Shown here one piece after another: positions 2,631-62,741 of a DNA stretch of 64,000 bases. Made by a program: the position numbers and the translations under genes. How positions within the stretch are numbered: the stretch's first letter is position 1; every line of letters starts with the position of its first letter. The stretch is taken from positions 62,001 to 126,000 of IMG/VR virus record IMGVR_UViG_3300031957_002643; one strand, given 5' to 3'. Under the pieces are notes generated by a model. That model had not been told where the DNA came from, made no database searches, and worked only from the letters and a program-made list of their open reading frames with translations.

Positions 2631-2707
2631 TGGCACCCCCAGAAGGATTCGAACCTCCGACACGCAGGGTAGAAACCTGCTGCTCTTCCGGGCTGAGCTA
2701 TGGGGGC
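2631..2707 (-). tRNA. tRNA-Arg (anticodon TCT) with atypical loop
   Basis: GCCCCCA/TGGGGGT acceptor stem, anticodon arm GCAGG-TTTCTAC-CCTGC, GGTTCGAATCC, encoded CCA. Confidence 0.88.
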
Positions 2708-2713
2708 ACACGG

Positions 2714-3010
2714 TTACAATGAGTATTTAGCACTGTGTGCTGTTTCAGTCAAGCTGACAAGAAGAGCCTTCAAATTTGGCGCGATGCCTGCGATCTTATT
2801 AAGCAAGTCTAACTGTGCCGCCTTGATCATGTTCTCAGACAAAATTGATACACTAAGAGTTTCGCCATAACCCGACTGAATAATTTCGTTATAAACTCTT
2901 GTGATGGTTTCTTGACTGATCGCAATCCCCTCATTACTCACATCATATTCAAATTTCAATGTTTGATCATCATCAAACGAGAACTTGCACATGTATGCCG
3001 AAGCAGTCAT
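2714..3010 (-). CDS. hypothetical protein
   Basis: 98-aa ORF with AGGA RBS, in a tightly packed operon. Confidence 0.65.
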   Translation of the reverse strand: MTASAYMCKFSFDDDQTLKFEYDVSNEGIAISQETITRVYNEIIQSGYGETLSVSILSENMIKAAQLDLLNKIAGIAPNLKALLVSLTETAHSAKYSL

Positions 3011-3020
3011 CGGTTAATCC

Positions 3021-3245
3021 TTAAACTGTGAAGGACAAGAGCAGCAATACAGTTGCCCATCCTAATTTGAAGAAGGCATGCATTGTTCTGAATCGGTCAT
3101 AAGACCCACAAACATTTAATGCTTCTCTTTCGCTGCCTGCACGTTTTACGATGTATTTCCATGCAGTCAAATCACTGACCAAAATGTATCTCCAAACAAC
3201 GAAGATACAAATTGCCCAAACCGTGTAGTACCAAAAAGTGCTCAT
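3021..3245 (-). CDS. small membrane protein (two TM segments)
   Basis: Hydrophobic N- and C-terminal stretches. Confidence 0.6.
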   Translation of the reverse strand: MSTFWYYTVWAICIFVVWRYILVSDLTAWKYIVKRAGSEREALNVCGSYDRFRTMHAFFKLGWATVLLLLSFTV

Positions 3246-3308
3246 GCATCTTTGGTATCAGGGGGTTCACCATATTGCAACCCCCTGATACTAAAATCAG
3301 CAGATCGC

Positions 3309-3542
3309 TTAGGCGTAATGCGGAAGCGTATAAACTGCGACAGGATAGCCACGAGTGTTGTTACGAGTCGTATTCGTAACAATGGTGCCATTATTGACCA
3401 TCTCAGAAAGACGGGTGGACACCGTGCCACGGTTCAATTCGTAACGATTTACGATTTCCTGACAGGTGCGGCCACGGCCACGAGCGATGGTGAGTTCAGA
3501 AATGATGCGATCCGCAACAGAGTTGATAGTTGATTTTGCCAT
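3309..3542 (-). CDS. winged helix-turn-helix DNA-binding protein
   Basis: TCQEIVNRYELNRGTVSTRLSEMVNNG followed by a beta-wing; AAGGAG RBS. Confidence 0.75.
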   Translation of the reverse strand: MAKSTINSVADRIISELTIARGRGRTCQEIVNRYELNRGTVSTRLSEMVNNGTIVTNTTRNNTRGYPVAVYTLPHYA

Positions 3543-3577
3543 GATAATCTCCTTTAGACTAAATCAAATGCTTGAGA

Positions 3578-4804
3578 TCACATCATAGTACAATCGTGCG
3601 CGGTTTTCACATCACACGCGCGGTCTCTGATATTTTTTGCAGCATTTAAATCTGCATTTTCAGAATGACCACATGAAACACAGTTGAAACTGGATTGGGA
3701 CTTGCGGTTCTCTTTAGCAATATGGCCACAGGCCGAACACTGTTGAGACGTGAACTTTGCTGATACCTCGATAACAGAGCCACCCATAGGTTCTGTCTTG
3801 TATTTTAGCTGTTGTTTAATCGTGTACAAACCGGGCCGCAAAAGTTCACGGTTCAGTCCAGACTTTGCTTTCACGTTCTTTCCCGGTTCTTCAACGGTGC
3901 CTTTTGCCGATTTGGTCATGTTTTTTAACTTCAAATCTTCTACCGCAAAAGTTTTGTTCTTTTTAACCAGTGCAGCCGTGATCTGATGTCGAGATGCCTG
4001 AGTTGCACGTGTTTTGCGCGAATTCAGCTTTCTCTTTTCTACCAAGACTTTCTTGCGTCTATTAGAACCTTTTTTCGCGCGAGACAGCTTGCGTTGTGAC
4101 TGTTTAATACGGGCGTCGAGAACTTCGTCTTTATGGATTTGGTAAACATCACCATCAGATGTCATGATGGTTTTGTTGATACCCATATCAATTCCAATGA
4201 TCTCTTGTGAATGTGGAATCACTGGTTTTGTGACTGTGATTGTTTCAGTCACCGCCAAATGCCATGTTTCTGCTGCCGGGTCATAAACAATACGAGCATT
4301 CGCACCAAGTGAACCTTTGATTTTGGTCCACTTCTTATATTTCACCCATCCTAATTTTGGAATCTTGATACTGTTTTGTCCGAATCTAACATAAACGGTT
4401 TGGCCGCGCGCCTTGCTCACACCATTAATGCGAATATAAATGCCAAATTTATCAAAATACTCTCGTTTGGTAGGATATTTTGCTTTCAATTTGGGATTGA
4501 AGAAATTAGAACGTGCTTGCTCTAGGTCACTCCATGCAGTAAGAATTGAATCTGACGGGGCTTCACGAAGCCATTCGTTGCCATCTTTCTTCTTATATGC
4601 AGTGATGTCAGAAGATTTTAGCGACAGGTATTTGCCCTTACGTTGATCTTCCGGCAAGGGCAAAATCGTATCACGATAATGTTGGTCGTATACATCTAAG
4701 AAATGATTATAGATGTGGCGACATGCGCCTCTCCATTTGAACAATGTTTTTTCTTGTTCGGGAGATGGATACAATGGGAATTTGATACCACGACTGATTT
4801 GCAT
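3578..4804 (-). CDS. tnpB: CRISPR-associated TnpB/Cas12f-like RNA-guided endonuclease (408 aa)
   Basis: N-terminal HTH (KFPLYPSPEQ...GACRHIYN), RuvC-I IGIDMG, RuvC-II AVEDL, zinc finger CSACG/CVSCG, RuvC-III NADLNAAKNI. Confidence 0.93.
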   Translation of the reverse strand: MQISRGIKFPLYPSPEQEKTLFKWRGACRHIYNHFLDVYDQHYRDTILPLPEDQRKGKYLSLKSSDITAYKKKDGNEWLREAPSDSILTAWSDLEQARSNFFNPKLKAKYPTKREYFDKFGIYIRINGVSKARGQTVYVRFGQNSIKIPKLGWVKYKKWTKIKGSLGANARIVYDPAAETWHLAVTETITVTKPVIPHSQEIIGIDMGINKTIMTSDGDVYQIHKDEVLDARIKQSQRKLSRAKKGSNRRKKVLVEKRKLNSRKTRATQASRHQITAALVKKNKTFAVEDLKLKNMTKSAKGTVEEPGKNVKAKSGLNRELLRPGLYTIKQQLKYKTEPMGGSVIEVSAKFTSQQCSACGHIAKENRKSQSSFNCVSCGHSENADLNAAKNIRDRACDVKTAHDCTMM

Positions 4805-4822
4805 TGTTCTTCTTCCAGATAT

Positions 4823-5252
4823 GTTTCAGTTATCATACAAACCAATAGCTGCCCGATCCTATCACCGAAGACAGACTGCTAGGGCTGTTTCAGTTACCAT
4901 ACAAACCAATGGTTACTCGAACAGAACGTGCTTCGCTTCTCGGTGGAGTACTGTTTCAGTTACCATACAAACCAATGGTTACTCGAACTGCTGGACCGCC
5001 ATACTTCGTTTCGCGCTCGTTTCAGTTACCATACAAACCAATGGTTACTCGAACCAACATCAACCGATCTTCATACTCGAACCAGTTTCAGTTACCATAC
5101 AAACCAATGGTTGCTCGAACTTGTTCAAGAAATTGTGTGACCGGATGTAAGTTCCAGTTACCATACAAACCAATGGTTACTTGAACGGTCCTCGAAGTCG
5201 AACCACGGGGTCACATGTTCCAGTTACCATACAAACCAATGGTTACTTGAAC
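4823..5252 (-). CRISPR. CRISPR array: 7 repeats of 36 nt, 6 spacers (one of 28 nt, five of 30 nt)
   Basis: Plus-strand repeat GTTTCAGTTACCATACAAACCAATGGTTACTCGAAC starts at 4823 (6 mismatches), 4887, 4953, 5019, 5085, 5151 and 5217, with unique spacers. Minus orientation is inferred from the degenerate end repeat, the GAAAC 3' end and the promoter. Confidence 0.97.
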
Positions 5253-5480
5253 TGAAACCATAGCATCTCACTAGAAACATTCACGAAACTAGCTATGTAG
5301 CAACCATTAATATGGTAATCGAGCGGATCACAAGGACCTTCCGTGCTCATTTTAACGCTTCATTTGAAAGGCTTCCACCATCTTGTATCATGTTGCCATA
5401 ACCAATCCGGCTTCCACAAATCATCCACGTCTATGACGATCTGAAACAACCGCCATGTGTTCGTGTTGGTGAACACGAAT
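5253..5480 (-). ncRNA. putative tracrRNA/leader scaffold with anti-repeat
   Basis: Non-coding; 5299-5318 AGCAACCATT-AA-TATGGTAA matches two blocks of the reverse-complement repeat; hairpin TTCGTGTT-GGTG-AACACGAA at about 5460-5479. Confidence 0.55.
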
Positions 5481-5482
5481 GC

Positions 5483-5510
5483 ATAATGGTATATTTTTTT
5501 CATTAGTCAA
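5483..5510 (-). promoter_or_regulatory. putative sigma70 promoter for leader-array-tnpB
   Basis: TTGACT-16nt-CATTAT on the minus strand. Confidence 0.5.
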
Positions 5511-5543
5511 CGAGAAAATGCACAATAAATACCTCTGACGCAT

Positions 5544-6479
5544 ATGGAGCATTTTATGTCAGCTAAGCAGCAAAATCCACTATTGGACGATCTAGACAAT
5601 TTACCTCACATCACAATCACCTTGCCATCAAAGGGATTATTCTATGATGAGGATATGTTTGTAGAAGGAACCGATCCTACTGAATTGGAGGTTCATCCAT
5701 TTACGATGTGGGAAGAGGTTCATCATAGTAATCCGTTTGCCATCATGAGTGGCAAGGCTACTCGCAAAATGGTGAATACCGTTGCACCTGAGATCAAGAA
5801 TCCTGATGGTCTATGTTCTTATGATGTTGATATTCTAATGCTCGCGGGCCGAATGGCTTCTTATGGCGACAAAATGAAAATCACATTGACCTGTGGTAAT
5901 CCCGATCATGTTCGAGAAGTCGAAGAGAATGGTCAAAAGAAAAAGGTCAAATGCGAATCTAAAACGGATATGGATGTCAATATTCGCGAATTGATCAATG
6001 GTTATCCGATGATCGAAAATACGGATGATTGGAATGTGGAATTGCCAAATGGGCAAAAGGTCACGTTCCGACCAACATTGTATAATGATATGTTGAGTGC
6101 AATGAAAATTGGTGTGTCTCAGGAGAAGATCAATCAGATTATCAGAACCATGAAGGATTTGCCTGAAGAAAAGATATTCGAACTATCTGACCAAAGTGTT
6201 GATAACTTGATGAATGTGAAATTGGTCACGACTGTTTCAAGTATTAAATCGGTCATCACATCTGATGGTTCTAAAACGATTAAAGATCGGGACATGATTG
6301 TGCAGTGGTTGAGTCGTCTGAATGCCGATTACATCGATATTATCCAAGACAAGTTGGACGAATTGTCGGCACCATTCGAAAACACTGGTCGCGTTTCATA
6401 TGTGTGCCCTGAATGCGGATACGAAAACAAAGGCATTAATCTGGTTCAGGATCAATCGCGTTTTTTTACTCGCGGCTAA
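5544..6479 (+). CDS. T4 gp26/gp51-like baseplate hub or tail assembly chaperone
   Basis: ITLPSKGLFY, DVDILMLAGRMASYGD, C-terminal CPECG...FF; lies upstream of the tape measure; start probably 5556. Confidence 0.8.
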   Translation: MEHFMSAKQQNPLLDDLDNLPHITITLPSKGLFYDEDMFVEGTDPTELEVHPFTMWEEVHHSNPFAIMSGKATRKMVNTVAPEIKNPDGLCSYDVDILMLAGRMASYGDKMKITLTCGNPDHVREVEENGQKKKVKCESKTDMDVNIRELINGYPMIENTDDWNVELPNGQKVTFRPTLYNDMLSAMKIGVSQEKINQIIRTMKDLPEEKIFELSDQSVDNLMNVKLVTTVSSIKSVITSDGSKTIKDRDMIVQWLSRLNADYIDIIQDKLDELSAPFENTGRVSYVCPECGYENKGINLVQDQSRFFTRG

Positions 6480-39900: not shown

Positions 39901-42900
39901 TCATTTCACCTTTTTGTATTCCACCTCTAATTTGTCTACATCTTTTCTCTCTGCAAACACATGATAGAAGAAATCCCAATTCTTGATTAGATTCTTGCTC
40001 TTTATATAGACCCTATTGTTTTCGATCTTCTCGACATAAATGTCTTGTGCCTTGCCCATTGGTGTTAGTGAAACAGTGATACTATCCGCATCAACTAGTT
40101 CGATCCAATAATCTGGAAGCTCGATTACATGTGACTTTGAGCGACCACGAACATAGACGCCATTTTCTGGTCCTTCCAATGAACCATATCTTAATTTGTA
40201 GTTCTCTTTGGTCGGGTGATCAATAACGAATGATTTTTGAGTTGCATTCAGTGCGCCCGTGATCGTAATACCGGTGCTGTCTACTTCTGCAATGTTCGTG
40301 CTATTAATGATTAGATACAAGGTGTTATCTGCACCTTGGCCAATACCTGTGACCGGATTTGACCTATTCGGAACAAGTGTTGGATTGGTTGATGATGGTG
40401 TCTCGTTAAGAAGTGCCGGGCCTTTTGTTGCCTGCATTTCGAAGCCAGCGGCGGACAAAATTGCCACCGAAGAACCATCAATAGCCATTCCTAAATTGCC
40501 TGTTGCGGCATAAAAACCAGTATCAGGATGATCCTGTAGCGAAACCCCCGGAGCAGCAGCCGATCCATCAGATGCTAGAATTTGACCAGCAACACCAATT
40601 TTTCCAATGAACCAAGAATTCTCTTGAACTTCAAGATTACCAGTCTTGGTCACTACGTTACTATATGATCCGGCACTGCCACGGATTTCGAGAACGTCAG
40701 TATTTGTCCAATATCCGGTTCTCGTGTCATCACCAGTATTATCATACGTGAATACTGCCGGATCATCGATCATACCAATAGTTGAACCAAACCTTGGTGA
40801 GATAGAGTAATTCGTGATGATGGTGTCAGTTATAATGTTGGCACCCTCAATACCATCAACCGTATCGGCATCTATGCCATTGCCGGAACCTTCGTCTCCA
40901 ACAGTTAGAATTCTACTGCTGGAAACAAATGCTTGACCCGTTGAGGTATTCACTTCAAAAATAGAAGTATCGGCTGAATCAGTTACTTTGAATAATGTAT
41001 CTGCTGCATTCTTTACAAGTATATTTCCATTATTTTGAATTAGAAGATCGTCGCCCGTTGTTCTCTTGATGAAGGCATCGGTTGCTGGAACAGAGCTTTT
41101 GAACACCAAGCTCACATCGTTTGCAAAATTCTTGTTTGCTGTTACATCATTACCAGTGGCATCCAATTGGAAATATCGAGCATCATTGTAGTCTCTATTG
41201 CCAACATGGGTCCCGGCAGACGGGTTCGTTGATGCTGTGATCGCTGCTGTGAATGAAGCTGTACCAGTGACATTCAATGCACCGCCGATGTCTAGGCGAT
41301 CTTTGAATTCCCAATATCCAAGATCAGCATCATACGTGAAATCGCGAGTAGGCTGATATGTTCCACCATCGTATGGTGTCATTGCAAATCTATGTTCGGC
41401 ATCGTCATGAAGGAAGCGAATTGTCCCCTCATTCGCACCGAAATAAAGGATGACACCCGTATCAATATTTGAAGTAGCATCCGTTCTCACGAATTGGGAT
41501 GCGTGAATACTATCAACCGTGTCAGCATCGATACCATTACCAGAACCTTCGTCATTTGTCGTCAGGATACGATAATAATTTGATCCATCATTTGTGAGAG
41601 ACCAATAATCAGATGTCTCATTCCACAATACTGAAACATTTGCAGATGTACCGCGTTCTACTTCAATACCAGCATCTTGTGATGGCGTGCCAGCTTCGTC
41701 AGAATTCAAGACAATGATGTTGTCGCCAATTTCCACAGTGTTAGAATTGACAGTTGTCGTAGTTCCTTGAACTGTCAAATTACCAGCAACAGTAACCCCT
41801 GTCCCGTTCACAGTGAGTGCAGCAGTTCCATCACTCCTGATGATTGTTTCAGAACGACCAATTTCCAAAACAGTTGCAGCAGTATCACCAGAATTTTCAG
41901 CTTGGATCAATAATTTACCAAGATGATTTCGGTTGATCATATAAGTGTTGTTGTCACCGGAATCATAATAGATGGAGAAATCCGTATCATCACCAAAGCT
42001 CAACTGGTTGTCATCGTAATATGTGTGTGATGCTTCAATTGCTGAAAATGAAATACGACTGACTAGATCAGACCCATCGATCCCATCCAAAGTATCAGCA
42101 TCAATACCATTACCTGATCCATAATCGGCAGTCGTTACAATTCCAAGATCGCTCTTAAGATTTGTGAATGATCTCTTTCTCGCAGTTCCACCTGTTGAAA
42201 AATCTGAAAACAAGAAGAGGTCTTGTACGGTTGCAGCCTGATCCGTGATTTCCGATGGATCAAATGACAGCGTGAAGTTTTGATTTAGTTGTCCAGAACC
42301 GATACTAGCAGCCAAACCGAGACCCGGTGTGATGGTTCTGGTTGACGGAACACTGTTGGTGTTTCTCGCTACCGGTGAAACAACAAGATCAGTAATTGTT
42401 CCTGTTGAAAGATTGGTTGACCACACGTAAACGTAATTCGTTGCGGTTTCATTCACCAAGGATGCTGATGCGAAGAAAATTCTCCACTGATTGGAACCAT
42501 CACCATTGAAAGCTCCAAGGTTAGTTGCTGTGATGGCTGAAGTACCAACTGCAAGATTGACACTCGAACCCATTCCAGTGTGATTGATTAGGATTTCTAC
42601 ACCATCAGCCGTATCACTTTGAACCGGATCGAATGCGAACGAGATTGCACCCGTTACTGTCGTCTGTGTTGGAACCGCATATGAACCACTAAATGATGCA
42701 ATGACCGCATCATTACCTGCTGGACCGGTTGGACCTGTAGCACCGGCAACACCATCACTTCCTGCTGGACCGGTTGGACCGGTTGGGCCTTGAGCACCGT
42801 CATTACCTGCTGGTCCCGTTGGTCCTGTCGCCCCTGTCGCACCATCATCACCGACAATAGAAGTCGCTGCGCCCCACGCGCCTGCGGTCTTAGGTCCATA

Positions 42901-45663
42901 TAGATCATAAGTGTCTGTATCTAAATAGAAATCACCATCCACACCATCAGCAACATCATCTGGTGCGCCAGAACCATTGAGCACGGTTCTACCATCCACA
43001 CCATCATTACCTGCTGGACCAGCAATGCCCTGTGGTCCAATTGGACCGGTTGGACCGGTTGGACCCTCAGCACCGGTTGGACCGGTTGGGCCAGTTGGAC
43101 CCTGAATACCTTGTTCGCCCTGAGCGCCCTGAACTCCTGCTGGACCGGTTGGGCCAGTTGGACCTTGAGCGCCCTGCGGACCAGTTGGACCCTGAATACC
43201 TTGTTCACCCTGAATACCTTGGATGCCTTGAATGCCCTGCGGACCGGTTGGACCGGTTGGTCCTTGGATGCCTTGTTCGCCTTGTGGACCGGTTGGACCG
43301 GTTGGGCCGGTTGGACCCGGAAGTCCTGAAGATGAGACGTTTAGAATTTGAATGGCATCATCAGCATCTTTAAAGTAGATATTGCCATCTTTATAGTTCA
43401 AGAACAGCTCACCATAGGCCAGATCACCAGCCGCAGGCTGAACACCCTGCAAGCCGCTGCTCTTGACGGTAATAAGCATGTCATCACCATCAGCAATCAA
43501 CCCATCAAGTGATAGACTTGCCTGATTGGTAGTTGCCAGATCACCAAGTTCCAATGCAGTTCTAGCATCTGCCGCAGTAGCGGTTCCTGCTAGAGTTCGA
43601 CCAAAAGCTTTCAAGTCATACAAGGCGGCAGTATTAAGTGCAGTGGTGTATATTGCTTTATCGGCGGCAGTTGTAAGCCCGGAAATACTTTGCAGCAATG
43701 CGCTGTATGCTTGAACATCTGAACCAATAGCAACACCAAGATTAGTTCTTGCTGAATTTTTATTAGACAAATCGTCAAGGTTTAATGATGCTGTCAGTTT
43801 TCCTGCAAGAGAATTGGTAATGGTCGTTGCAAAGTTTGGATCATCACCCAACGCAGCAGCAAGTTCATTTAGTGTATCTAATGCAGATGGTGCACCACCT
43901 AACAGATTGGAAATTGCCGTGGAAACAAATGCGGTTGTTGCAAGTTGATCTGTATTAGTACCAGCTAAAGCTGTTGGTGCTTCAGGCTCGCCTGTGAAAA
44001 CGGGAGTATCCAGTCTGGCAATAGAAGATGGAATATCACCATCTACCAATGTTGTACCAGATGATACACGTCCATATGAGTCAACCGCAACTTTGGTATA
44101 TGTTCCCGGTGTACCAATTGTTGGAAGATCGCCTGATTGAAGTGCTGCACCCGCAGTAACAATACCACGGTCGTTAACAGTTACCTTGCCATAGGTGCCA
44201 GCAGAAACGCCAGATGCAGGAAGATCAGAATTTGAAAGCGTTGTCGCGCTCGTTACGATACCTTTGACGTTGACAGTTAACTTTGTGTATGTGCCAGCGG
44301 TGACACCGGAATCTGGAAGTCCTTCATTATCCAACGCCTGACCATCGGTAACACGTCCATATTGGTCAACGGTCAATGAATTATAGGTGCCCGGTGTAAC
44401 AATACTTGGAAGCAGTGTTGCATCGAATGATTGTGCAGCCGTAATGATACCTTTGTCGTTAACAGTGACCGCACCATATGTTCCCGGCGTGACTCCTGAA
44501 ACTGGCAAGTCTGAATTGACAAGCTGTCCCGCACTCACAGCACGACCAGTTGTATCCAATTCGATTTTTGTGTAGGTTCCAGCAGAAAGACCAACAATAG
44601 TTGGGAAATCCGCAGTTTCAAGAGAACTAGTTCCGGTAACAATACCTTTTGAATTGACGACCAGTTTTGCATACGTTCCCGGCGTGACTCCTGAATCTGG
44701 AAGATCAGAATTGATTAAAGTGGTTCCAGCAGTTGCCCTACCATATGTGTCAACAGTGAGCTTGGTATATGTTCCGGCAGAAATTGCTGTTGGCGGCAAG
44801 TCACTGTCTTGAATATTAGCAACGGCAGTAATGATACCTTTATTGTTTACGGTGACTTTAGAATATGTACCCGGTGTAATAGCTTGTGCGGCAATCGCAA
44901 TGTCATAACTTGAACCAGCACCATTATCCAACAGATCGAAGTCAGCAGAAAAATTAATGCTTCTTTCGTTATTGAGCGTTGCGGTATTTCCAATCGTGAG
45001 AACAGGAATATCAATGAACGGATCAGTGATATTTTTGACCCATTCAGTCGTTGGAACAACCCTACTATCTTCACCAGCCGCAGGCGTGTCCGTTAAAATG
45101 AGTGTTGAATCAATACTATCGTCAAAGGTTTTGTTGCCTCTGATAAACTGATCTCCAACAAGTGCGACAAATCCTTCAGTTAAGGCTTCAGCCGGGTCCT
45201 TGTTCACCCAATTGGATGAAAGCGCGTCATAAACAAGAAGTTGCTTATCCCCAAGGGAAGTCAGATTGGTATCCGCAGCATCAGCGATAGATGCGGCTGG
45301 ACCCGCAGGACCGGCTGGACCCTGAATACCTTGTTCACCCTGATCACCCTGATCACCTGTTGGACCCAACAGGCTTGAAATGAAAACCCATTCACCATTC
45401 ACTCGGTAAAAAATTTCACCGGTTGACTTCTTTAGGTAATAATCGTCCTCATTGCCGACATTTGGATCAGGATCGGTATCACCATTGTACCATTTGGATG
45501 CAAGGTATGGATTTTGGGCACGAAGATAAATTGGAGGAAGATCAGGAAATGAAATCTTGGTACCAGCATTTTCGCCATCTCTGATATACTCGATGGTCAT
45601 ATCCTCGATGGAAAATGATGTGGAAGTTGTTCCTAATGTATTCGTTAAACGTGATTTAGTCAT
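39901..45663 (-). CDS. giant tail fibre (1920 aa) with collagen-like and [13 protein letters not shown] repeats
   Basis: Nine GTY-type repeats of about 33 aa, [27 protein letters not shown] tracts, C-terminal KSFVIDHP...GSLEGPE domain. Confidence 0.88.
42720..43320 (-). repeat. collagen-coding tandem repeats (GPTGPT/GIQG)
   Basis: Repeated ggaccggtt 9-mers inside the fibre gene. Confidence 0.9.
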
Positions 45664-61860: not shown

Positions 61861-62741
61861 CTCATAACAACGACATTATTTCTCATTGATTTCAAAATGG
61901 TCAAAATTGCTTTCTCGCCAACTTTTGCAATTCTGTCCAACCTTGCTTGACCTTTTCTTTTGTTACCGATCAAAGGGTGGCCGTGGAATTCGTCTGGCAT
62001 TTGAAATCTGATTTTTCCAGTTACCAAAAATTGAGTAATGGATTCTGTCATCAACTCATCCACAACAGCCAGATTATTGTTTCTCGCACTTCCAAATGTG
62101 AAGAAGGCATTATAGAAATTGGCAATTTCAGGAGGTTGTCTAAAAACGCCATCATCGGCAGCAAAGCCGGTTGGGGCGCTCCATAGATTATATCCATACA
62201 TCTCGGAAATAATTTTTTCCATCTCTCCAAATACTTTTTTGGTGAAGACGTGCCACACATAATCAAATTCCAACCCTTTTCGCGGGTAGTTAATGATTTC
62301 ATGTGCAAACCGATGCATGAAACTCCAAGGTGTCATTTTGCCCTTGATCATAACGATGACGCCCTCATCATTTAAAACCTCAACATCCAAACCACTAAGA
62401 ATAAGAACAATAGACCCTTTTCGCTTATTGGTAGCTATGAGTTTCTTTAAAGATTCGGGATGTTCGTCTCGGGTATATTTTGTCAAATCCCGATTGATGA
62501 CAAAATAATCAATATCAACTGGTAGTCGGTCTAGGACCTTTTTAACACGTTCCAATAGATCGGAATTCAAAATGATGTCTTTTTGCTCATCATTCCAATC
62601 CGATCCAGTTTTGTGTATAATCTTTTTGTGGCCCAGCAGTCCGAAGAAACGTGGTTTCTTGTAGACGAGTTCAAACGTGTCCGAATCCCAATCGTCACCT
62701 TTGATCACCTGTCCAGCTTCTATCAAATCTTGAATTTTCAT
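61857..62741 (-). CDS. putative packaged internal protein with HRxxH motif
   Basis: Leader MKIQDLIE; MTPWSFMHRFAHE; preceded by TAAATA-N5-ATG. Confidence 0.65.
   Translation of the reverse strand: MKIQDLIEAGQVIKGDDWDSDTFELVYKKPRFFGLLGHKKIIHKTGSDWNDEQKDIILNSDLLERVKKVLDRLPVDIDYFVINRDLTKYTRDEHPESLKKLIATNKRKGSIVLILSGLDVEVLNDEGVIVMIKGKMTPWSFMHRFAHEIINYPRKGLEFDYVWHVFTKKVFGEMEKIISEMYGYNLWSAPTGFAADDGVFRQPPEIANFYNAFFTFGSARNNNLAVVDELMTESITQFLVTGKIRFQMPDEFHGHPLIGNKRKGQARLDRIAKVGEKAILTILKSMRNNVVVMS

Follow-up and report, generated by a model that had tools for sequence, protein, structure and literature searches.

We identified a putative RNA-guided nuclease locus in a stretch of viral DNA of 64,000 nucleotides (nt), referred to here as the window, which covers positions 62,001 to 126,000 of the IMG/VR record IMGVR_UViG_3300031957_002643, a viral contig of 335,552 bp. 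The locus combines a gene for a TnpB-like protein of 408 amino acids (aa) with a CRISPR array. It is probably a compact, adaptation-less interference module of the type V kind, similar to the transposon-CRISPR intermediates (TranC) and arranged in a permuted order, in a jumbo phage of about 335 kb. The combination of a TnpB-like nuclease with an array is an already described class (TranC, type V-U), and the locus is a rearranged example of this class, not a wholly new kind. Its unusual features are that the array and the putative RNA scaffold lie upstream of the nuclease gene, that the nuclease is likely to be co-transcribed with them and that the position in the jumbo phage genome is fixed.

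The array is regular. Its seven repeats start at plus-strand positions 4823, 4887, 4953, 5019, 5085, 5151 and 5217 and enclose six spacers of 28, 30, 30, 30, 30 and 30 nt, all of which are unique. The consensus repeat, read in the tnpB direction, starts with GTTCGAGTAACC and ends with GGTAACTGAAAC. Repeats 2-6 share 89-100% identity with the reference copy (over 38 nt), and the most degenerate copy is the leader-distal one (4823-4858), nearest to the ATG of the nuclease gene. The repeat is quasi-palindromic and forms a hairpin. In the homologous repeat of contig L033, which comes from a related jumbo phage, the hairpin has an energy of -11.4 kcal/mol on the tnpB strand versus 0 on the opposite strand, and four G.U pairs retain it. 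Its retention on the tnpB strand alone fixes the direction of transcription and indicates selection on the RNA. Array and gene run in the same direction and, with a promoter candidate ahead of them (Table 1), probably form one transcription unit, as the original prediction had proposed; that prediction had also placed the array 18 nt from the ATG, a distance that can be read directly. The mean guanine-cytosine content of the spacers is about 51% versus about 42% for the phage, which is compatible with foreign targets but proves nothing. In spacer 3 (window 5055-5084), bases 2-10 on the tnpB strand (GTTCGAGTA) are the same as the first nine bases of the repeat. This identity could be due to chance, or it could be a trace of array recombination or slippage.

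Table 1. Features of the nuclease-array locus (window coordinates)
Feature	Position	Strand	Basis or remark
35-nt gap to the next gene	3543..3577	-	phage backbone according to alignment with L033, L081 and L082
tnpB-like RNA-guided nuclease gene (predicted), 408 aa	3578..4804	-	open reading frame, family models, alignment, AlphaFold2
Junction between terminal degenerate repeat and ATG, 18 nt	4805..4822	-	weak purine-rich ribosome-binding stretch (GGAAGAAG)
CRISPR array, 7 x 36-nt repeats and 6 spacers	4823..5252	-	read from sequence
Leader-proximal linker from anti-repeat element to first repeat, about 46 nt	5253..5297	-	read from sequence
Anti-repeat-like element, 26 nt, complementing both arms of the repeat hairpin	5298..5323	-	duplex energies, compensatory changes
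Conserved non-coding block, about 180 nt; candidate trans-activating RNA or relocated omegaRNA scaffold	5295..5476	-	conservation, covariation, covariance model
Sigma-70-like promoter candidate (TTGACT, 16 nt, CATTAT)	5483..5510	-	consensus match only, 9/12

The protein had been described from the window as TnpB-like, with a complete D-E-D triad and a zinc finger, and family models, alignment and fold all bear this out. The NCBIfam model guided_TnpB matches it at 228.6 bits (cut-off 100), and the Pfam domains HTH_OrfB_IS605 (PF12323), OrfB_IS605 (PF01385) and Cas12f1-like_TNB (PF07282) are found above their cut-offs. None of the Cas12 family models comes near its cut-off; NCBIfam CRISPR_Cas12f2, for instance, reaches 75.2 bits versus a cut-off of 450. 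The RuvC triad (D206-E289-D385) and the zinc-finger cysteines (C356/C359/C375/C378) fall in invariant or near-invariant columns of an alignment of 52 proteins. The architecture is WED/REC/RuvC/TNB with a CxxC...CxxC zinc finger, and there are neither extra domains nor a C-terminal tail, the chain ending 16 aa past the motif NAAKNI. The AlphaFold2 model has a pLDDT (predicted local distance difference test) score of 90.3, and its top Foldseek matches are the TnpB proteins of ISDra2 and ISFba1 (8h1j and 8iaz; template modelling (TM) scores 0.71-0.81), with Cas12f, Cas12p and LaTranC ranking below them. Among the PDB sequence matches, Cas12n (9j09) is second-best at 108 bits, over residues 227-394 only; Cas12f reaches no more than 67 bits and LaTranC 39 bits.

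The surroundings of the gene are not those of a transposon. The original prediction had noted that the short distance to the next gene leaves little room for an omegaRNA, and there is no room for one 3' of the stop codon; an Rfam scan of positions 2800-5800 gave noise only. The 35-nt gap is backbone and not a transposon right end or an omegaRNA, because tnpB-less relatives have the same sequence there. The absence of tnpA, cas1 and cas2 that had been reported also stood: no Pfam match to tnpA or another transposase, cas1, cas2 or cas4 was found in 20 neighbouring or mid-sized open reading frames (ORFs), and there is no cas1, cas2, cas4 or tnpA in the gene calls of the Joint Genome Institute (JGI) within 4 kb on either side of the locus. 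The tnpB-like gene is present in a single copy in the window and occupies the same site in two phage lineages.

The second lineage is that of the closest homologue. Among 5.8 billion proteins there is one close homologue, P0002, with 58% identity, from a related jumbo phage; its conservation relative to the window protein is concentrated in the catalytic motifs. A metagenome scan with the protein alignment gave no close relatives. Both P0002 contigs (L033 and L034) break within a repeat array about 46 nt upstream of the start codon, in the same orientation as in the window, so that the sole close homologue also has an upstream array. The repeat of the P0002 locus is 36 nt long and identical to the window repeat at 21 of 36 positions, and its spacers are all different. 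Another contig (L150), located via the neighbouring baseplate hub gene, reads from array through leader to a divergent hub gene, and its repeat agrees with that of L033 at 34 of 36 positions. These layouts indicate that the arrangement hub-leader-array-tnpB is common to two phage lineages although only 58% identity is left between their nucleases, and that the repeats have diverged along with the nucleases.

The pairing of nuclease and array extends beyond these phages. In a tree of the 120 best matches (Shimodaira-Hasegawa-like support), the window protein and P0002 are paired with support 100 inside an eight-member clade (support 99) that also includes P0003/P0004, P0006/P0009, P0005 and P0024. 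P0003 (455 aa, 39% identity) is followed about 10 nt past its stop codon by an array of 36-nt repeats, which are identical to the window repeat at 23 of 36 positions, have the same length and hairpin position and end in ...AAC. The final 65 nt of the P0003 ORF contain a clear anti-repeat, inside the region encoding a low-complexity C-terminal tail; its duplex energy is -32.9 kcal/mol versus -24.7 kcal/mol for the next best site, and 12 nt of it are a perfect complement to the repeat centre. Judged by its sequence, the P0003 locus (L086:3501-5381; ENA ERZ24794639) is a Cas12n-style or TranC-style locus related to that of the window. Its contig is non-phage-like and also encodes an RPA-type replication initiator. 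The P0006 locus (L087:1500-2000; Logan SRR24908296) has an irregular array of repeats of about 25 nt that overlaps the end of the ORF, and in the sister clade P0012 has a 36-nt array at the ORF end. P0005, P0023 and L003, on the other hand, have a classic 3' omegaRNA scaffold ending in ...TTGAAC. Loci of the omegaRNA type and of the array type are thus interspersed in this part of the TnpB tree. Since homologous repeats stand beside both the P0002 and the P0003 nucleases, the repeat family has been inherited with the nuclease family across genomic contexts. The coupling of nuclease and array is not due to chance and is conserved among homologues.

Some other arrays were seen in this survey. 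P0006 and P0008 (L089:4739-4895) have irregular mini-arrays with repeats of about 21-25 nt and spacers of variable length, which start inside or just past the nuclease ORF and look like primitive intermediates between omegaRNA and array. Among 56 other IMG/VR loci with the subfamily motifs NMTKSAKG / PGKNVKAK, arrays are found in 3, all of them downstream. Among the IMG/VR loci L009-L030, many viral contigs encode larger TnpB-like nucleases (564-627 aa) with downstream arrays of 4-26 repeats ending in ...TTGAAAC or ...TTGAAGG (for example L011:5299-7790, L009:1842-4442 and L021:5302-7509). These are phage-borne type V systems.

Proteins of the TnpB fold are expected to need a large RNA scaffold, and the complexes 8h1j and 8iaz are rich in RNA. 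The C-terminal tail of the relatives is missing from both the window protein and P0002, and for neither the window nor L033 did duplex scans or a search for the complement of the repeat centre find an anti-repeat within the ORF or 3' of it. The sole sizeable non-coding stretch at the locus is the leader (5253-5543). The original prediction had named a leader in the transcription unit but had overlooked what looks like the scaffold: the leader appears from its sequence to be a conserved structured RNA with an anti-repeat. Its identity to the leader of L081, a contig from another related phage (hub 62% identical; Logan SRR25180568), is 75.5% with seven 1-nt indels, more than in the genes on either side (hub 67%, winged-helix 66%). 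A possible small gene in this stretch, an ORF of 47 aa (5360-5503, minus strand), was rejected: it is probably not real because the conservation with L081 crosses frame-shifting 1-nt indels.

Three leaders (window, L150 and L081) were available for covariation. On the tnpB strand their consensus fold has 35 pairs, 12 of which are changed on both sides; none of 500 shuffles reaches 12, and slid controls give 0-2. On the opposite strand the fold is weaker (-9.8 versus -21.2 kcal/mol) and has 4 pairs changed on both sides. The anti-repeat element of the window pairs with its cognate repeat at -25.0 kcal/mol, which is reached by none of 1000 shuffled repeats, but with the L150 repeat at only -11.5 kcal/mol. 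In L150, the duplex of the homologous element with the cognate repeat has -16.2 kcal/mol (reached by 11 of 1000 shuffled repeats), and compensatory changes in the element lie opposite repeat positions 9, 22 and 28. The distance from the end of the anti-repeat to the first repeat is 46-51 nt in all three loci (window, L150 and P0003). When a covariance model was built from the three leaders, it gave weak matches to the tail-coding sequences of relatives: one in P0006, directly before the mini-array (26.5 bits, with a rough E-value of ~2e-6), and one, from a targeted search, in P0003, directly before the anti-repeat (10.1 bits, E 0.0015, equally rough). Both matches take in the coding motif of the tail peptide that P0006 and P0003 have in common; a blastn comparison of the leader with the tails of the relatives gave nothing. 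The conserved block is a candidate tracr-like scaffold and would be the counterpart of the scaffold embedded in the tails of the relatives. The promoter candidate would start a transcript near 5476, at the 5' edge of this block, and is not clearly conserved in L081.

On this basis, the following mechanism is proposed. An early promoter at the candidate site would drive a single minus-strand transcript, whose first part would be the structured RNA, a counterpart of the omegaRNA or trans-activating CRISPR RNA (tracrRNA) that relatives carry in the 3' tail of the ORF. This part would end in the anti-repeat and would be followed by the seven repeats and six spacers, and then by the mRNA of a tail-less nuclease with the canonical TnpB fold. 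After processing of the transcript, the anti-repeat would pair the scaffold RNA with the repeat-derived CRISPR RNA (crRNA), and the pair would be loaded into the TnpB-like protein. The loaded guide would direct a RuvC cut of DNA matching the spacer, next to a 5' target- or protospacer-adjacent motif (TAM/PAM). It would probably act early in infection, its likely targets being rival phages or other mobile elements that share the host. In terms of gene order, the relatives' sequence of nuclease, tail-embedded tracrRNA and array would have been permuted here to promoter, tracr-like scaffold, array and tail-less nuclease. A more specific version is possible but held only tentatively: the locus may represent an unclassified type V/TranC branch in which the tail scaffold and the array were relocated 5' of a tail-less 408-aa TnpB and a single promoter-tracr-array-nuclease operon was fixed in jumbo phages.

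Several observations weigh against this mechanism. The pairing of the L150 leader element with its own repeat is modest and near the non-cognate value of -15.5 kcal/mol, and in a scan of the whole 2.6-kb region the window duplex does not stand out from those of shuffled repeats. A relic resembling a repeat would also pass for an anti-repeat, given the quasi-palindromic repeat sequence. The covariation comes from three sequences, whose alignment also served to derive the structure. One further match of the covariance model, with a similar score of 22 bits in a portal gene, is probably false. The spacers match nothing in GenBank phages, PLSDB plasmids, complete E. coli genomes, the window or the fetched loci, and a search of IMG/VR with three spacers (exact 20-mers) gave no match. 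As no protospacer was found, neither a PAM/TAM nor a class of targets can be deduced. Finally, the module is dispensable, since L081 has lost it and the related contigs L082-L084 have lost it or never had it. One candidate target was considered and rejected: the truncated 19-nt last spacer of L033 (97-115) agrees with the antisense strand of the window tnpB (3702-3720) at 15 of 19 positions, which is at chance level (about 0.15 such matches expected per spacer).

It is also conceivable that the nuclease uses a single fixed omegaRNA-like guide, which would consist of the leader read into the first repeat and the first spacer or of an RNA within the ORF, the other parts of the array being vestigial or regulatory and the protein a domesticated TnpB with one target. 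A protein that is a canonical TnpB by sequence and fold would fit such a role, and the scaffold would be contiguous with the first repeat on one transcript. Moreover, in the last 30 codons of tnpB (3578-3670) the synonymous-codon identity to the L033 homologue is 0.70 versus 0.42 gene-wide. However, this excess hints at an overlapping signal at the nucleotide level that could serve, for example, the expression of the downstream gene. Conserved sequence past the stop codon in L033 was tried as an omegaRNA remnant and rejected, as the same sequence in tnpB-less phages identifies it as backbone. In addition, repeats 2-6 have remained nearly identical while the spacers are unique and wholly different between the lineages, as in an array that is kept in use. 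We therefore consider a single-guide nuclease unlikely.

A second alternative is that the array is an orphan phage mini-array, which borrows the Cas effector and the adaptation proteins of the host, and that tnpB is adjacent to it by a chance insertion or old synteny. The lack of cas genes nearby is in agreement with this, and class 2 systems of hosts typically have the 36/30 geometry. The turnover of spacers between the phages implies some adaptation machinery, and Cas12 loci do not typically have their array upstream of the nuclease (PMC10691335). Nevertheless, homologous 36-nt repeats accompany homologous nucleases in three contexts, one of them the non-phage-like contig with a downstream array and an ORF-embedded anti-repeat, and the leader RNA resembles the guide scaffold of the relatives. 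Nor was a donor array found. A degenerate repeat pattern gave 33 single matches at chance level and no array in 185,579 bacterial species representatives, where repeats diverged past the pattern would escape; it gave no array elsewhere in IMG/VR, and the L033 repeat was not found in IMG/VR. A borrowed host effector is thus quite improbable.

The possibility that the module is a decaying relic without current function arises from the related phages. In L081 (5565-5990), a short microhomology marks the junction between the leader and the final ~150 nt of tnpB, so that the part from the first zinc-finger cysteines to the stop codon is kept and the array and the remaining gene are deleted. In L082-L084 (hub 58% identical) only 142 nt separate the hub from the winged-helix gene. 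These contigs indicate that the leader block, the array and the gene are present or absent together. The failure to find targets points in the same direction as these losses. In the window, however, the ORF is intact with all catalytic residues and zinc ligands, its 58% identity to P0002 is concentrated in the catalytic motifs, the array is regular and the leader RNA shows compensatory changes, which makes decay very improbable for this copy. A crRNA-guided DNA binder or transcriptional regulator such as TldR or Cas12m, in place of a cutter, is suggested by the repeated domestication of TnpB as an RNA-guided regulator (bioRxiv 10.1101/2023.11.30.569447; PMC11013384) and by the winged-helix gene immediately downstream, but is very improbable, as the zinc finger and the full set of RuvC catalytic residues are retained here and were lost in the described regulator lineages, and as the winged-helix gene belongs to the phage backbone, its orthologues holding the same place in module-less relatives.

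The interference module that we favor can be compared with several known systems. TranC are intermediates between transposon and CRISPR with a split omegaRNA (Jin et al., Cell 2025, cited in PMC13639567), clade 9 of which averages 414 aa; its member CauTranC9 is TnpB-sized and tail-less and comes from a Caudoviricetes genome, and its spacers match phages (bioRxiv 10.64898/2026.03.27.714800). The window locus shares with TranC and CauTranC9 a nuclease of TnpB size without an expanded REC/WED or a C-terminal domain, a short array, the absence of cas1, cas2 and cas4 (here, nearby) and the origin from Caudoviricetes. Its guide may likewise be an omegaRNA split into tracrRNA and crRNA, which is a TranC feature. 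In contrast, CauTranC9 is reported to have five repeats of 38 bp where the window locus has seven of 36 bp, and the array and putative tracrRNA of the window lie upstream of the nuclease gene, unlike in TranC. LaTranC, the sole TranC compared by sequence and structure, is distant (39 bits; TM 0.69/0.60). For type V-U, Altae-Tran et al. described about 40 groups, with conserved arrays almost always downstream of the nuclease gene (PMC10691335).

Since the lineage lies in an array-rich clade, where P0003/P0004 carry a homologous 36-nt array and P0006 a primitive one, and since the class had been described as TranC (cited in PMC13639567), as V-U (PMC10691335) and with CauTranC9 (bioRxiv 10.64898/2026.03.27.714800), the earlier claim of an independent, early-stage domestication of TnpB is not supported, and its novelty was overstated.

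Cas12n (type V-N, formerly c2c9 or V-U4) is, like the window nuclease, an intermediate near TnpB, and its RuvC half matches the window protein. In Cas12n the tracrRNA is embedded where the 3' end of the ORF encodes the tail, and the array follows right past the stop codon, as in P0003 and not as in the window. Moreover, the window protein has neither the tail nor the enlarged REC/WED of Cas12n and matches it in the C-terminal half only, with its own tracr-like RNA and array upstream. The IS200/IS605 TnpB-omegaRNA systems (ISDra2, ISFba1) provide the best full-length match in sequence and fold, with the same domain order and catalytic residues. The window locus differs from them by having no 3' omegaRNA, tnpA or insertion sequence ends, by its fixed phage site and by its multi-spacer array. 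Cas12f (V-F), Cas12j/CasPhi and the 'hacker' Cas12p are also small RuvC nucleases with arrays and without adaptation genes, some of them on phages, but they are larger proteins with downstream arrays, and the TM score of Cas12f is about 0.6. The repeat end ...TGAAAC of the window is also found with the larger phage TnpB-like nucleases of IMG/VR (L011). Virus-borne orphan mini-arrays that use host Cas proteins resemble the window array in being short, viral and without cas1 and cas2; the window array differs in having an attached effector gene whose homologues carry homologous repeats, and no host array matched it.

If the locus is such an unclassified branch with a relocated scaffold and array, the nuclease would be among the smallest natural multi-spacer CRISPR effectors, and the locus would be a natural experiment indicating that a TnpB ORF can be separated from its RNA scaffold and the order of the two changed. 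Nucleases of TnpB size that take exchangeable crRNAs are sought for miniature genome editing, and no better evidence exists for the origin of type V systems from transposons. With the scaffold apparently separated from the ORF, the protein-coding and RNA-coding constraints, which overlap in TnpB and Cas12n, come apart. Natural comparators are provided by P0003 (classic downstream layout), P0006 (primitive array) and the deletion derivatives L081 and L082. A predicted interference module without adaptation genes in a jumbo phage also raises the question of how its spacers turn over.

The window contains the phage genes for a portal, a major head protein, a large terminase, a UvsX-like recombinase, a helicase and a T4-type baseplate hub. 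In its major capsid protein, the phage shares about 55% identity with several jumbo phages (~350 kb) of Gram-negative bacteria, including Escherichia phage EJP2, Yersinia phage fHe-Yen9-04 and Vibrio, Xanthomonas and Erwinia phages. Neither the tnpB region nor the terminase region has nucleotide relatives among GenBank phages. The winged-helix-like protein encoded directly downstream of tnpB (77 aa; 3309-3542, minus strand) gives weak matches to HTH_24 and DUF7343. Two tRNA-Arg(TCT) genes lie about 300 nt apart at 2328-2404 and 2631-2707 (minus strand), and near this pair are an ORF resembling a class II aminoacyl-tRNA synthetase (732-1436) and a GNAT acetyltransferase (1442-1903). Tandem repeats of the GGACCGGTT type, with units of 9 nt and 45 nt, occur in runs over 42708-45357 inside an ORF of 1,920 aa (39901-45663, minus strand); they encode collagen-like Gly-X-Y repeats, as in phage fibre proteins.

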